Assembly: GCA_033442325.1 (NCBI GenBank) | Contig: JAWQFM010000033.1 | Coordinates: 238,973 to 302,972, forward strand | Length of the DNA: 64,000 bases | Reading direction: 5' to 3' | Origin: Salpingoeca rosetta | Lineage: Eukaryota; Protista; Choanoflagellata | Shown here: piece after piece, positions 22,521 through 42,783 of the stretch | Numbering within the stretch: position 1 is the first letter of the stretch | Layout: every line of letters begins with the position of its first letter | Translations under genes and position numbers: made by a program | The notes under the pieces: model-generated | Databases searched by the model: none | Seen by the model: only the letters and a program-made list of their open reading frames with translations | What the model was told of the DNA's origin: nothing

Positions 22521-28958
<6,438 letters not shown>

Positions 28959-32460: not shown

Positions 32461-32710
32461 TCACTTCTGCCGAAGAATCACAGACATCAACCTGTCCACA
32501 GCGCTCTGGTGCTGCTGCTGCGGCTGTCGGTGTTGGTGGTGTGGGGGTGACGGGTATGGCGGGTGCGGTGCAATGCTGTTTGACTCAACGATGGCAGCAT
32601 CAGGTGCGGGTCGAGAAGCAACATTTTGCAGCAGCTGCTGTTGCTGCCGCTGCCACGCTTGTGCTGGCGGTGTGGCATTAATGGAGCCAGCAAGGAAACG
32701 TTGTTGCTGT

Positions 32711-32791
<81 letters not shown>

Positions 32792-34305
32792 ATGGTTGAA
32801 TGCGGTGCACCAGACAAGGAGTAGAGCAGCGATGATGACGATGAGGGTGCTGTGTATGACGGCTGCGGTGGCGGTGGCATTGGCATTGATGGTGGTGGTG
32901 GTGGTGGTGGTGGTGACTGCATCACAACATGTGATGATGGCTGTGTCGAGGAATAACCAGCAACGTTGGTAGTACCAACAGCATCGCTCGCTGGTGCAGG
33001 ATTCGCGTTTGGGGTGGATGCAATGACTGCAGCTCGTGTCCCACTCATTGGGACCGACATCGTGACTGCTGTTGCTGCTGTTGCTGCTGTCGTTGCTGTG
33101 GCCGGCTGAGTGGTAGCTGGTTGCGGTGTGAGTGCAGGAGGTGGCGGCGGCAGTGCAGAAGAAGAAGAACATGATGACGATGATGACGATGTTGGGGAGA
33201 AGGCCTTCCCCGCTGCTGACGACAATGGTGCTGGACCTGTGATTGTTGTGGGTGCCGGCAACGACTTCGATAGCGATGCTGCTGCAACTGCTGATGGCGG
33301 TGGCGGCGGTGCCTTGTTGGAGCCCATGGCTGCACTTGCTGCACTCACTGCGTTTGATGACGATGAAGATGATGACGCCGCTGCTGTCGATGGTGCTGAT
33401 GGTGGCGGCGGTGGTCGTGGCTTTGGTGGTCCAAACTTCACCTTCAGCACGTATCGCATCTTAATGCGCGAGCGATCGTACACCTGACGTGAAACAGAAG
33501 GGAGACAGAGGCGAGGGGGGCGTCAGCGGTGATGTGATGTGAGGTGATGAGTGTGATGTGACATTGCACAAACAGCACTACCGCTGATTGACAGACAGAC
33601 AGGCAAGGGTGCAAGCAAGCACTCAACAGTAACATCAGCAAGCAATCCAGCGTACCAACACACATCATCATCACAGCCACAGCAAACCACCACCACCACC
33701 ACAATCATCATCACTACCACCACCACTATCAGCACCAATTGTCATGAATTGTCACCGCACCACAAACTCGTCGTAGAGCAGCGCGCCGCCATCTGCCGCG
33801 GGATTTGAAATCGGTTTTCCCAGCGGCACTTGCACTCCGTCATCCAGCACCACTGCACAAGCGTTGTGTTTTGTGTATTTGTGCATGTGTTTTGTGTATT
33901 TGTGCATGTGTGTGTGTGTGTGTATGTGTGTGTGTGTGAGTTTGGTTGACAATGGATGCAAAATGGAGAAACAGTACAATCACGCGCGCCTCATGTGCAC
34001 ACTACCGCTGCCACTGCTGTTGTTGTACCTGTTTCATTGGGATTTGGTGTTGTTCTGCCAATTCCCCATGTGCTGTCCTTCTCCGCTTTCTTGCACTCCC
34101 GCATTGCATGGTAGTCAGCATGCAAGCTGTCATGGTGTGTGTGTGTGTGTGCATGTGTTTGAGCGAGAGAGAGAGAGAGAGTGTGTGTGTGTGTGTGTGT
34201 GTGCGTGCGCGTGTGTGAGTGGATGTTGGTTCATGGACACATGTGAATGTGGCATTGGATGCACAGGCGGAAGATAGAGCGGTTGTGTAAACTACACGAT
34301 AACAT

Positions 34306-34366
<61 letters not shown>

Positions 34367-34976
34367 ATCACACCTCTTCACACCCCTACCCCACCTCTCG
34401 TGCATATCGCCGAGAGCGACTTCGCAGAGGACGAGGATGCCGTGTTTCCCGTTTGCCGCCATGCAGTAGTTGGCACTCTTCGACACCATCGACGCAAAGT
34501 ACACGCCTGAGGATTGTTGTGTGTGTGTGTGTGTGTTTGTGTGTGTGTTTGCACGTGTGTTTGTGTGTGTGTGTGTGTTTGCACGTGTGTGTGTGTGTGT
34601 GTTTACACGTGTGTGTGTGTGTGTGTCGTGTGTTGTTAGTGTGTTGTAGTTGTTGAAGGGGTATGAGGAGGCATGTGTAATGCGATGAGTACAGTGGGTA
34701 ATTGAGCACGTATAGTTGTGTGCAGGTTGAGAGAAGCGCCACAGCAAGGTTGAGATAAAACCATTCCAAGGAAGGGCATTTGCACCTCACCTTTTCCAAA
34801 CACTGACGAAATGGGCGGTGATTGAAGATCAAGCGTTGAAAAATATTGGTTGTGGTGATTGTATGATTGTGGTGAGGTACAGGGAATGCGGGCAAAGCGG
34901 GTAAAGAAGCAAGCAACACACGCGCACCACGCAATGAAACAGCACGTGGCGTGGACTTGAGCGCGTGTGCGCGTTG

Positions 34977-35040
<64 letters not shown>

Positions 35041-35177
35041 CTTACTCTGGGGGGGATGACAAGCGGAGTGGAGTAAAGGATTGGAACAACAGGAGAGCGC
35101 AGTGCGAGCTCATTGTGAGCACATTGTGAGCAGACAGGGCGCTGTCACAGATACGCACACACACACACACACAAGCA

Positions 35178-35233
<56 letters not shown>

Positions 35234-35323
35234 CGCATATGCACAGCTGCCACATGTCAAACATGACCAGCGTACATATCCCGTCGCGGGCGCCTCTGGC
35301 GGTGCGATGCGAAGACCTAATTG

Positions 35324-35400
<77 letters not shown>

Positions 35401-36537
35401 CAGGTGTGTGAGTGCTCACGTTCATCACGAACAAGACCATCACACGCACGTACACATACACCTACGTGCACACTCGTACACGCACTCATTCACACGCACA
35501 CAACCCTCCACTCCCCCGTTCTTGAGCGTTGCCTGACCTTGGGAGAGGATGCTGACCCAGTTGGTGAGCGGAGATCCGTGCCACAGCAGTCGCCTGTTTG
35601 TACACGTTTTAAAACGCTCAAATGCCTCTTCTTCACTCTGACGCGACACGCGGAATGCGCTTGCAATCTCGAGGCTGTAGCAGCTGTGCGTCGCCGCGTG
35701 CGTGTTCTGCACGTACTTGCGCAACATTGCCATCTCGTCCGACGCGTTGGGCACAGTCTCCAATGAGCACTGGAGTGTTGCGTAATTGGCGTCAACGGGG
35801 TGCACGCTGTGGTCCTCATCGCCTTCTTGCATCAGTTTGTTTGCGTGCTCAATCTCCAACAGCTGCTCCAGCACATCCAACTTGCCCTTCAGCCGCGAGC
35901 GCGAGCTATCAGTGGCGGTGTGGTGGTGACGTGGGGAATGTGGGGCGGCAGGTGGTGGTTTGAGTGGTGGTGTGATGATGAATGAGCCGGTGTAGTTGAA
36001 AGAGTACGGACAGTTGCACACACGCACCAGAAAATATACGAACACACACATTCACACACACACACATTCACACACACACACACACACATTCACACACACA
36101 CATTCACACACACACATTCACACACACACATTCACACACACATACACACACATATATACACATACACACACACGTGCATAGACGAACTTGATGACGGGCG
36201 GGGCCTCCCATCCCTTGAAATCGTGCGGGATTGCGGTGTAGAAGCGGGATGTTGCATCAGTCAACAGCACATACTCGTGCTGTGAATTCAGCACCGGCCG
36301 CTTCCCACTGATGATGTCGTGAATTTCCTTCAGAATGGCGTAACCCTGCACGGAGATGCGATGATGACGATTGGGATGGGCGGCGACAGTGGCGGATTGA
36401 TGGTGAGCTTGGCAACAGTACCAGCGGTGGTACGACAACAGCGCGTGTCAACGGCACACGCAAACACGCACGCATGTATGCAGACACATGTGTACAACGC
36501 GCACGCACATTTGCACACACGCGCGCGCGCACGCACG

Positions 36538-36568
<31 letters not shown>

Positions 36569-37125
36569 GGACGCACGCACACACATACACACGCACACAC
36601 ACATGCACACACACACACGCACACACACACACGCACGCACACACACGCACGCACACGCACACACACACACACACGCACACACGCACACACGCACGCACAC
36701 ACGCACACACGCACACACGCACACACGCACACACGCACACACACACACGCACACACACACACACACCTGCTTGATCTGGCGATCTGAAATGGAACCGAGC
36801 GGCATTTTCTTGATGTCGATGTTTGCGTCCTCCATCGATTTCCGAAACATTTTCTTGTTGAAGATGAGTTTCACAAAGGATCGCAGCTCGGGCGCCAGCT
36901 GGCAAAGCCACGGAAACGGAGAAACAACACACGATGATAGCATAGCATAGCGGTGCGCATGGTGGGTGGGGTGTCATGGTGAGCAACGTGCAACATTGTG
37001 AATGTGATCACCATCCACACAAGATGCTCTTGCATTGCAACACGAACATGGCACAGCGAGAACCAGAGTCACACAGGGCACAACGCACACCGAGGTAGCA
37101 CAAATGAACAAACGTCCACCTCCCA

Positions 37126-37157
<32 letters not shown>

Positions 37158-37820
37158 ACATACACAACACAACACAACACACACACACCACATACACACA
37201 CCACATACACAACACAACACAACACACACACACCACATACACAACGCAACACCTTTGAAGGGATAGTGGCTGCGCGTTTGTCCGCGTGAATGCGCTTCTT
37301 GTTCGCTGCATCCAAATCAACACCACGCGACTGCCCTTCCAGCTCAACCATGTTGTAGTGCCCGGGCTGCTGCTCAAACGAATCCACTTTCGCCCACGAC
37401 CACCCCGTCTGCTTTTTGAATTTCGCGGCAAAGGCCTTTGAAACAGGGTGGCGAGTGGTGTGGTGAGTGGTCGTGTTGGTCGTGGTGGTGGTGGTGGTGG
37501 TTGTGGTGGTTGTGGTGGCGTGGTTGTTGATGAATGAGTCGCGAAATGGTATGCCAAAGGATATTCACATTATGCGCACACGCTTGCACGTCCACACCCA
37601 TAGCATGCAAGCACCACCAGTCACACAGATTCAACTCACTGTAATGGCAGCGTCGATGCTTGCGTAGCACTGGTGAGAGTACGACAGGAAATCTATAACA
37701 CACATGCACGCATCCACAGGAAAATGGAGGTGTGATGTGTGGTGGTTTGACGTGATGTGAGATTGCGTGCAAACGGTGCAATGCAAATCATATGCAAAGT
37801 CGCAATTTCACAGCGCAACG

Positions 37821-41246: not shown

Positions 41247-42540
41247 ATCACACACACACACCACAGCAACAAAGTGTAGCAAAACAAACGAGTGAATACA
41301 ATCACAGCGTGCTCATCTCCCCCCCCCCCCGCATCCTCAACCCTTCCATCCTTCCACCACCACAGTCACCATCGCACCTTGCGCGGGATAGCAAGGGCAC
41401 CAATGAGTTTGAAGGTCATCCCCATCAGCTCCATATTGGGTGGTACATCGTCTTCGTCCTCGTCCTCGCTCGGCACGCGGTGATCAAAGGCCGGGCCCTC
41501 AGGATGGCACTGGCGTGTTGGTGGTGGTGGTGGTGGTGGTGGTGGTGGTGGTGGTGGTGTGATAGCGTGTTGTGATGTGATTGGAGCGATGAGAGAGCTA
41601 CTGTTTACGCATGTGCATACAAGCAGGCACACACATGCACACGCACATATGCACGCACGTGCACACCTTACCTCGACGCGAACGAGAGATGACTTGTCTA
41701 TGGCGACGATGGCGGGAACCTGAACAGCACGTGCACGCAACGCAGGCATCAGAAAGGGGAGAGGGAATGGCAAATGCGGTCGTGTGTATGAAGAGGTAAT
41801 GAGAGATCCACGTTGCCAATGTGGAGCAGACAGAGTGAGGGCCTGACGGAAGAAGATCATACACACACGCACACACACACACAAACACACACACACACAC
41901 TCACACACTCACGCACACACACACGCACACACACACACGANNNNNNNNNNNNNNNNNNNNNNNNNNNNNNNNNNNNNNNNNNNNNNNNNNNNNNNNNNNN
42001 NNNNNNNNNNNNNNNNNNNNNNNNNNNNNNNNNNNNNNNNNNNNNNNNNNNNNNNNNNNNNNNNNNNNNNNNNNNNNNNNNNNNNNNNNNNNNNNNNNNN
42101 NNNNNNNNNNNNNNNNNNNNNNNNNNNNNNNNNNNNNNNNNNNNNNNNNNNNNNNNNNNNNNNNNNNNNNNNNNNNNNNNNNNNNNNNNNNNNNNNNNNN
42201 NNNNNNNNNNNNNNNNNNNNNNNNNNNNNNNNNNNNNNNNNNNNNNNNNNNNNNNNNNNNNNNNNNNNNNNNNNNNNNNNNNNNNNNNNNNNNNNNNNNN
42301 NNNNNNNNNNNNNNNNNNNNNNNNNNNNNNNNNNNNNNNNNNNNNNNNNNNNNNNNNNNNNNNNNNNNNNNNNNNNNNNNNNNNNNNNNNNNNNNNNNNN
42401 NNNNNNNNNNNNNNNNNNNNNNNNNNNNNNNNNNNNNNNNNNNNNNNNNNNNNNNNNNNNNNNNNNNNNNNNNNNNNNNNNNNNNNNNNNNNNNNNNNNN
42501 NNNNNNNNNNNNNNNNNACACACACACAAACACACACACA

Positions 42541-42623
<83 letters not shown>

Positions 42624-42783
42624 CACACAAGCAAGCCAACCAACACACACACACACACGCGCGCGCGCGCTCTCTCTCTCTCTCTCTCCGTCTCTCACCT
42701 GCTTCGATTTTCGTGCTGCACCACAGACAAATACTGCGGCTGTCTGGCGCAATGGACGCCTCGCTGTCCGGGCAAAACGCCAT
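32461..42783 (-). CDS. PARP: PARP1-like poly(ADP-ribose) polymerase: zf-PARP (partial, gap), BRCT, charged linker, WGR, regulatory and catalytic domains, low-complexity tail
   Basis: Exon 42783-42699 gives [12 protein letters not shown] (zf-PARP start). BRCT-like [16 protein letters not shown]...[35 protein letters not shown]...FCRWGRVG...KFKKQTG. Regulatory [19 protein letters not shown]...[10 protein letters not shown]. Catalytic [55 protein letters not shown] (H-Y-E triad intact). Stop at 32461. Confidence 0.95.
34791..34802 (-). other. 12-nt microexon of the PARP gene (TG TTT GGA AAA G)
   Basis: Context ttcgtcag|TGTTTGGAAAAG|gtgagg encodes (M)FGK(G). It joins in phase to exon 34506-34395 (GC GTG TAC TTT GCG = GVYFA). 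Confidence 0.9.
35046..35046 (-). other. Predicted single-nucleotide exon (A) of the PARP gene
   Basis: The minus strand reads a pyrimidine-rich tract, then cccccag|A|gtaagt. It supplies the A of the ATG in TGY-M-FGKG. Flanking introns are 35047-35275 and 34803-35045, both GT-AG and of typical size. Confidence 0.8.
41941..42517. other. Assembly gap probably hiding PARP zinc-finger exon(s)
   Basis: 577 Ns. Exon 1 ends in phase 1, the next clear exon (41719) starts in phase 0, and the HxxC half of the finger is not clearly assignable. Confidence 0.95.
42543..42620. repeat. (CT)n microsatellite in PARP intron 1
   Basis: Directly visible next to the assembly gap. Confidence 0.9.

Follow-up and report, generated by a model that had tools for sequence, protein, structure and literature searches.

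Organization of a PARP1/2-like gene in Salpingoeca rosetta

The DNA considered here is a stretch of 64,000 nucleotides (nt) of the choanoflagellate Salpingoeca rosetta (assembly GCA_033442325.1, contig JAWQFM010000033.1, positions 238,973 to 302,972 of the forward strand; the whole stretch is called the window below), whose minus strand carries a PARP1/2-like gene composed of numerous short exons and of introns rich in microsatellites (Table 1). The domain order is that of PARP1/2-like proteins, with WGR and regulatory domains upstream of the catalytic domain. A scan of the S. rosetta assembly (55.4 Mb, 68 contigs) with the Pfam profile PF00644 matched the catalytic region of this gene at C33:274481-274714 (73.5 bits) and C33:273369-273527 (44.7 bits), both above the curated cut-off of 26.7 bits; C33 denotes the contig with the gene studied, C18 the contig of a paralog and L013 the longest contig of a relative described below. 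Within the part of the gene that encodes the active-site loop, a single adenine at position 35046 is, judging from the reading frame and from comparison with related loci, very probably a genuine spliceosomal exon of one nucleotide.

The case for this exon begins with the reading frame. Exon A ends with TCC CAA G at the donor gtcagg (35538, phase 1), and exon B, which reads GT CTT CGC ATC GCA CCG CCA GAG GCG CCC GCG ACG GGA TAT, encodes 14 residues with the preceding G and finishes on a complete Tyr codon, TAT. Exon C reads TG TTT GGA AAA G, which corresponds to Phe-Gly-Lys plus partial Met and Gly codons. Direct joining of exon B to exon C is off by exactly one base, and the frame is lost right after the Tyr. 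The 474-nt interval between these two exons contains a sole AG-N-GT of any kind, ccag-A-gtaagt, in which N is the A at 35046 and the donor is a perfect match to the universal consensus. The 62 nt before the acceptor of intron 1 hold no other AG, and the 153 nt before the acceptor of intron 2 hold none. With the A included, GGA TAT + A + TG TTT GGA AAA G + GC GTG TAC is translated as TGYMFGKGVYFA; the predicted spliced junction is ACGGGATAT-A-TGTTTGGAAAAG-GCGTGTAC, and the word that spans the extra base is TATATGTTT. In the frame restored in this way the catalytic His-Tyr-Glu (H-Y-E) triad is complete, with LLWHGS in exon A, GKGVYFA across exons C and D and LLYDEFVVY across exon F and the last exon, and this frame is kept only when the A at 35046 is included. 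The first-pass annotation of this DNA had proposed that the A restores the frame and yields Y M F G K G V Y, Met included, and translation bears this out; every one of its coordinates and phases is correct on the minus strand, and its flanking introns of 229 and 243 nt are as it described them.

A site of this kind is not frequent in the window. The strict motif YAG-N-GTA[AC]G[CT] occurs three times on the two strands of the 64 kb, versus about 3.9 occurrences expected by chance from uniform base frequencies, and the calculated probability that a copy with N = A and the orientation of the gene falls within the interval between exons B and C is ~0.004. The other matches, at 23651 and 61821 (both minus strand), were considered as further one-base exons and rejected as unrelated, the gene at 23.4-23.6 kb being on the plus strand. 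No intronless copy of the gene exists in the S. rosetta genome as far as the spliced 30-mer can tell, which is absent from it at up to two mismatches. Of the words sampled from a 4.2-kb stretch of the gene, a share of 0.30-0.36 is present in each of eight sequencing runs from two studies, close to the calculated exon-only share of ~0.27, and a share of 0.66-0.80 in five DNA-like runs. The shares of the eight runs agree with an expressed and spliced gene and are silent on the A junction itself.

Table 1. Coordinates of the PARP gene features in the window and of the candidate one-base exons found in other genes.
Feature	Position	Strand	Remarks
WGR-domain exon	37253..37435	-	aligns to plant PARP2 P0014
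PARP regulatory-domain exon	36767..36898	-	aligns to plant PARP2 P0014
Regulatory exon	36187-36345	-	aligns to plant PARP2 P0014
Exon A, regulatory-domain end and catalytic-domain start	35538..35905	-	PF00644, E = 5e-19
Intron A-B	35317..35537	-	5' end GT-rich; (CAT)n ahead of acceptor ttag
Exon B, 41 nt	35276..35316	-	ends in phase 0, donor gtacgc
Intron 1, 229 nt	35047..35275	-	(GT)n near 5' end; C/T-rich tract, acceptor cccccccag
One-nucleotide exon A (proposed)	35046	-	first base of the Met codon in GYMFGKG
Intron 2, 243 nt	34803..35045	-	donor gtaagt, then (CA)n; acceptor gtcag
Exon C, 12-nt microexon TGTTTGGAAAAG	34791..34802	-	starts in phase 1; donor gtgagg
Intron 3, 284 nt	34507..34790	-	3' end CA-rich
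Exon D, 112 nt, second active-site Tyr	34395..34506	-	ctcag, then GC GTG TAC TTT
Exon E, 98 nt	34029..34126	-	from translation
Exon F, catalytic Glu of the H-Y-E triad	33761..33852	-	from translation
Last exon, catalytic-domain end and tail to stop	32461..33483	-	from translation
GH38 one-base exon G (candidate)	G000:C16:141751 (L023:732)		flanking exons L023:..470 and L023:910-931
Dynein L024 (C21), candidate exons	C 586, T 377	-	
Dynein L025 (C20), candidate exons	C 815, T 576	-	
Dynein L026 (C23), candidate exons	C 769, T 1017		18-nt exon at 521-538
Dynein L027 (C7), candidate exons	C 523, T 734		

Most introns of the PARP gene (window 33500-37300) are GT-rich at the start and CA-rich at the end, frequently as (GT)n and (CA)n repeats; the acceptor of the proposed one-base exon is unusual among them in having a true C/T tract. 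The last exon continues past the catalytic domain into a low-complexity tail of ~320 residues (Ser/Pro/Ala runs and a poly-Gln of ~35), and the C18 paralog is without this tail. Elsewhere in the window, at about 41950-42640, there is a run of N, either masked or unresolved sequence, with (GA)n/(CT)n and (CA)n repeats at its borders.

Conservation of the predicted exon in a paralog and a marine relative

The same layout is found in the S. rosetta paralog on C18, which reads ACG GGT TAC, gtgcgt ... cacaacag-A-gtacgt ... ctgcag-TGTTTGGCAAAG-gtgagc ... gatcag-GCGTGTAC, with the one-base exon at L001:2197 and a predicted spliced junction of GGTTAC-A-TGTTTGGCAAAG-GCGTGTAC. With exon A as query, 1.84 billion representative proteins yielded one close relative, P0005, a read-through open reading frame of marine metagenome contigs (L013-L017) that belong to five ENA assemblies, two of which have TARA record names. 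This relative is 62-63% identical to exon A, and its longest contig reads GGC TAC, gtgagc ... caacacag-A-gtacgt ... ctccag-TGTTTGGCAAAG-gtttgt ... atcag-GTGTTTAC, with the A at L013:1187; the other four contigs carry the same one-base site. Conservation of ag-A-gt in related species, which had been put forward as a check on the exon, is thus observed both within S. rosetta and outside it. In the paralog and in the relative the 12-nt exon differs by one synonymous base and is bounded by cag and gt, and all three loci give the same 21-residue translation only when the A is included. Ten more library matches held no further choanoflagellate genome; they come from insects, a tardigrade, an anemone, a chytrid and protists.

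The conservation of the site stands out from its surroundings. Between C18 and the relative, 44% of the synonymous sites differ (dS 0.66) and the introns are largely unalignable; the longest identical block that their intronic intervals (428 and 305 nt) share is nevertheless a 17-mer, ACAGAGTACGTTTTGCA, centred on the A, whereas in 300 shuffles the longest block averaged 8.5 and never exceeded 13. Past the junction, in the frame that contains the extra base, the nonsynonymous and synonymous rates (dN/dS) are 0.066/0.664 for C18 versus the relative and 0.187/0.543 for C33 versus C18. The codons past the junction are thus subject to purifying selection (a ratio of about 0.1 in the first comparison), and both genes are maintained as coding sequence in the restored frame. 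The protein family agrees with the restored loop. Among about 220 fetched PARP homologues, GYMFGKG[VIL]Y is the reading in 192, the Tyr and the Phe are never separated by more than one residue, and other PARP paralogs of S. rosetta encode TGYMFGKGVYF within a single exon. These comparisons strongly support a reading in which the Tyr-Met-Phe-Gly-Lys loop would be built constitutively from the one-nucleotide exon and the 12-nt exon. As it was present before the duplication that gave rise to the two S. rosetta paralogs, the arrangement is old.

Several other observations concern intron positions in these genes. In the relative, the donor after exon D is apparently a GC (GAA AG, gcacgt; L013:1591-1593), the sole non-GT donor in these genes. 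A further PARP paralog of S. rosetta on C9 (L007, minus strand, ~1306-1506) has one intron that splits the Met codon (TAC AT, gtgagc ... tgtag, G TTT GGC) and no one-base exon. In fragments from other eukaryotes an intron follows GYM (P0003, P0156, P0157, P0134) or lies between Y and M (P0072), and intron positions at the PARP loop motif cluster within three bases.

Alternative readings of the interval between exons B and C

A number of points speak against a one-nucleotide exon. An in-frame GT is present just past exon B in each locus (+13 in C33, +4 in C18 and +10 in the relative), and, taken as a whole, the interval between exons B and C has the appearance of a single S. rosetta intron of the usual type, its first half having (GT)n and its second (CA)n. 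The public protein P0182, "poly polymerase [Salpingoeca rosetta]" (899 amino acids; domains PF05406, PF02877, PF00533 and PF08063), corresponds to the exons of the C18 paralog (G000:C18:691677-692472, L001:1905-2700) and is without the one-base exon. Moreover, three homologue searches, made with exon A, with exon A of the relative and with a profile composed of a 628-residue first row and the gene's own exons, found no transcript-derived protein of S. rosetta or of the relative that correctly spans the junction; the profile search returned only P0182, mis-spliced at the loop. In this model the GT 4 nt past exon B is joined straight to exon D, so that the one-base exon, the 12-nt exon and MFGKG are dropped and the loop reads GYVRVYFA (PEAPVTGYVRVYFASMV; TGYVRVYFASMV). 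This splicing is best read as a gene-prediction artefact, since the conserved FGKG is also gone. The spliced junction was also sought in JGI metagenome contigs with a degenerate cDNA (complementary DNA) pattern and with a protein-guided scan, and both came back blank, blanks that carry no weight.

A first alternative accepts the one-base exon and takes it to be regulated, its skipping producing a frameshifted and inactive product and thus acting as an on/off switch for PARP. Skipping would indeed remove the catalytic Tyr and Glu, and an engineered potato invertase exon of one nucleotide was skipped in 33% of transcripts (PMC4674806). However, the one-base exons of Arabidopsis and Fusarium are reported to be constitutive, and the same device occurs in housekeeping dynein motors (see below), in which regulated destruction seems unlikely. 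The (CA)n tract behind the donor had been proposed as an hnRNP L-type enhancer, but it is not conserved: in the paralog as in the relative, gtacgttttgca follows the donor and a CA tract is absent. Nor does the tract look like a dedicated element, as CA-rich 3' halves are common in the other introns of the PARP gene. A regulatory switch of this kind is therefore considered unlikely.

The remaining alternatives dispense with the one-base exon. The first-pass annotation had seen no alternative GT/AG pair nearby, which does not hold in the strict sense: with the GT 13 nt past exon B (TCA T, gtttga) the frame is restored as well. Exon B extended to this canonical donor and joined to exon C would give TGYVRWSLFGKGVY, in which VRWS is inserted and the Met is replaced by Leu. 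This GT is in the right phase, the extension has no stop codon, and the GT-rich intron starts supply such sites in all loci. Nevertheless, the offset differs from locus to locus and the resulting insertions are unrelated (VRWSL, VL and VSTL), the donors themselves are weak (gtttga, gtacat and gtgact), an insertion at the loop occurs in 0 of the about 220 homologues, and the conserved internal AG-A-GTA.GT site is left unexplained. Use of an alternative donor is thus very improbable.

A single 474-nt intron with a non-canonical boundary (GT...CA, the G of the acceptor then remaining in the product, or TA...AG) would also restore the frame, producing TAT GTG TTT, that is YVFGK, and the word TATGTGTTT. 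This works in all three loci, in each of which the acceptor is cag followed by TG, and the interval, with its (GT)n...(CA)n polarity, looks like one intron. However, all other reconstructed introns of the two S. rosetta genes are GT-AG, the GC donor of the relative being the sole departure in the set, and no intron class is known to have a CA acceptor. In addition, Val takes the position of the Met in 0 of the about 220 homologues, and this reading too leaves the conserved internal pair of splice sites without explanation, so that it has slightly less in its favour than the alternative donor and very little chance of being correct. Least credible of all is that one base is missing beside exon B or C through decay of the gene or an error of assembly; a one-base frame problem is the typical product of either, but the same base would have to be "missing" from the paralog as well as from five metagenome contigs of independent assemblies, P0182, a model annotated on a public record of S. 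rosetta, agrees with the exon sequence of C18, neither junction has a homopolymer, dN/dS is well below 1 on both sides of the junction, and the H-Y-E residues are intact in the restored frame. Three further candidates were rejected: a U12/AT-AC intron, whose boundaries do not fit; a GC donor 4 nt downstream, which is weak and not conserved; and a recursive site that keeps no nucleotide, since one base lies between AG and GT in all three PARP loci and is required by the frame.

Candidate one-nucleotide exons in other S. rosetta genes

Exons of the same kind, which supply a missing base at conserved motifs and have the signature YAG-N-GTA.G., are predicted elsewhere in the S. rosetta genome. A GH38 alpha-mannosidase gene on C16 reads CAC GAT GAC ACC, gtacgt ... 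ttgcag-G-gtacgt ... ccaaag, GC TGG CTC, which with the G included gives HTHDDTGW; the predicted spliced junction is GACACC-G-GCTGGCTC. In its paralogs on C12 (L018) and C8 (L020) there is just one intron, of phase 1, which coincides in position with the downstream intron of the C16 gene. In four paralogs of the dynein heavy chain (C21, C20, C23 and C7) two consecutive one-base exons complete Phe-Asn-Cys-Ser of AAA1, with the layout TTC AA, gt... cag-C-gtaag. ... ag-T-gtaagt ... ag, GC TC. GAT and the predicted spliced junction TTCAA-C-T-GCTC. The paralog on C3 (L028) has the T exon only, that on C27 (L030) a single plain intron after AAC T, and another one on C23 (L029) none of these one-base exons, and the dynein paralogs thus form a graded series of directly adjacent intron positions.

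Across PARP, GH38 and dynein genes all four bases are represented among the one-base exons. A stands at +3 in 12 of their 13 donors (GTAAGT, GTACGT or GTAAGC), which are not independent because many come from paralogs, versus 5 of the 20 ordinary donors taken for comparison from the two S. rosetta PARP genes, which are mostly GTGCG. preceded by G. The recurrence of predicted one-base exons in GH38 and dynein genes gives more confidence in the PARP exon and suggests a lineage-wide tolerance for exons of this size. That S. rosetta, and probably its marine relatives too, hold a whole class of conserved one-nucleotide exons, including tandem pairs (C then T at the FNC motif of dynein AAA1) and graded paralog series with zero, one or two such exons at one codon, is a tentative proposal, for which the odds fall a little short of even.

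Proposed splicing route and comparison with known systems

If the A at 35046 is an exon, expression of the PARP gene would involve the removal of three ordinary GT-AG introns of 229, 243 and 284 nt from this region, and the resulting messenger RNA would encode GYMFGKGVY, the invariant loop of the nicotinamide pocket. The acceptor signal, made up of the pyrimidine tract and AG, and the donor A-GTAAGT would overlap on the same few bases, and so probably would the footprints of U2AF at the acceptor and of U1 at the donor. As a consequence of this overlap the flanking introns could not be recognised simultaneously and would be removed sequentially, by intron definition, in a process that may be likened to splicing at a recursive site, except that a single base stays in the product. 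The lack of the exonic part of the U1 pairing (G at -1) is probably made good by the strength of the donor, which has A at +3, G at +5 and T at +6. Ordered or recursive-like splicing is a reasonable inference from this arrangement of signals. Recursive splice sites, or ratchet points, are AG-GT sites within long introns of Drosophila and vertebrates at which no base is kept. As at the PARP locus, their acceptor abuts a consensus GTAAGT donor and stepwise use is required; they differ in that they serve to remove very long introns and leave nothing behind, whereas the PARP site would retain one base between introns of ordinary size.

Two nuclear one-base exons have been published, those of APC11 in 2015 and of CYP621A in 2026. 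The exon of Arabidopsis thaliana APC11, A333, was proven by cDNA sequencing and mutagenesis, with the intronless rice APC11 genes used for comparison (Guo & Liu 2015, PMC4674806). As in PARP, it is a single A that lies between AG and GT in an apparent intron; annotation had overlooked it, and the frame depends on it. The APC11 exon is constitutive, and sequential splicing by intron definition with a recursive-like step has been proposed for it (PMC4674806). In contrast, the PARP exon is deduced by comparison only; two paralogs and a second species share it, its neighbour in the active-site loop is a 12-nt microexon, and several such exons are predicted in its genome. The one-nucleotide exon of Fusarium CYP621A, confirmed by SRA reads, was presented by its authors as the second known example (Nelson & Syed 2026, PMC12940212). 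Like that of PARP, it came to light through a phase mismatch at a conserved motif, an AG-N-GT aligned across orthologues and an intronless relative that served as a marker of length. It is, however, a fungal exon that lies between very short introns and supplies the middle base of a Gly codon, whereas the PARP introns are of ~230-250 nt and are known from genomic sequence. All the sequence-level features on which the APC11 and CYP621A papers relied are found at the PARP locus.

Constitutive microexons show a more distant likeness, among them those of potato invertase (9 nt) and chicken cTNT (6 nt), discussed in PMC4674806; they are also too short for exon definition and depend on strong flanking intron signals and two ordered steps, although they are still several nucleotides long. 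The one-base exon of placozoan mitochondrial cox1 completes a conserved codon as well (PMC5436844); being organellar and not a product of nuclear GT-AG splicing by the spliceosome, it resembles the PARP exon in outcome only.

Significance

A one-base exon in the catalytic loop of a DNA-damage enzyme is of an extremely rare kind. If confirmed by reads, the PARP exon would be the first known from Holozoa and from choanoflagellates, the lineage closest to animals, and probably one member of a larger set in this genome. The public model of the paralog lacks MFGKG, and the S. rosetta PARP, dynein and GH38 models therefore need manual correction; gene finders, for their part, need a state for one-base exons. 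S. rosetta can be transfected and edited, which makes it a good system for the study of exon definition in the absence of an exonic signal and of the order of intron removal. Should the tentative class of conserved one-nucleotide exons be real, introns would have been repeatedly gained, or shifted, within one base of an existing splice site, a pattern of intron birth or sliding that has not been described, and the spliceosome of S. rosetta would routinely handle exons that carry no exonic information.

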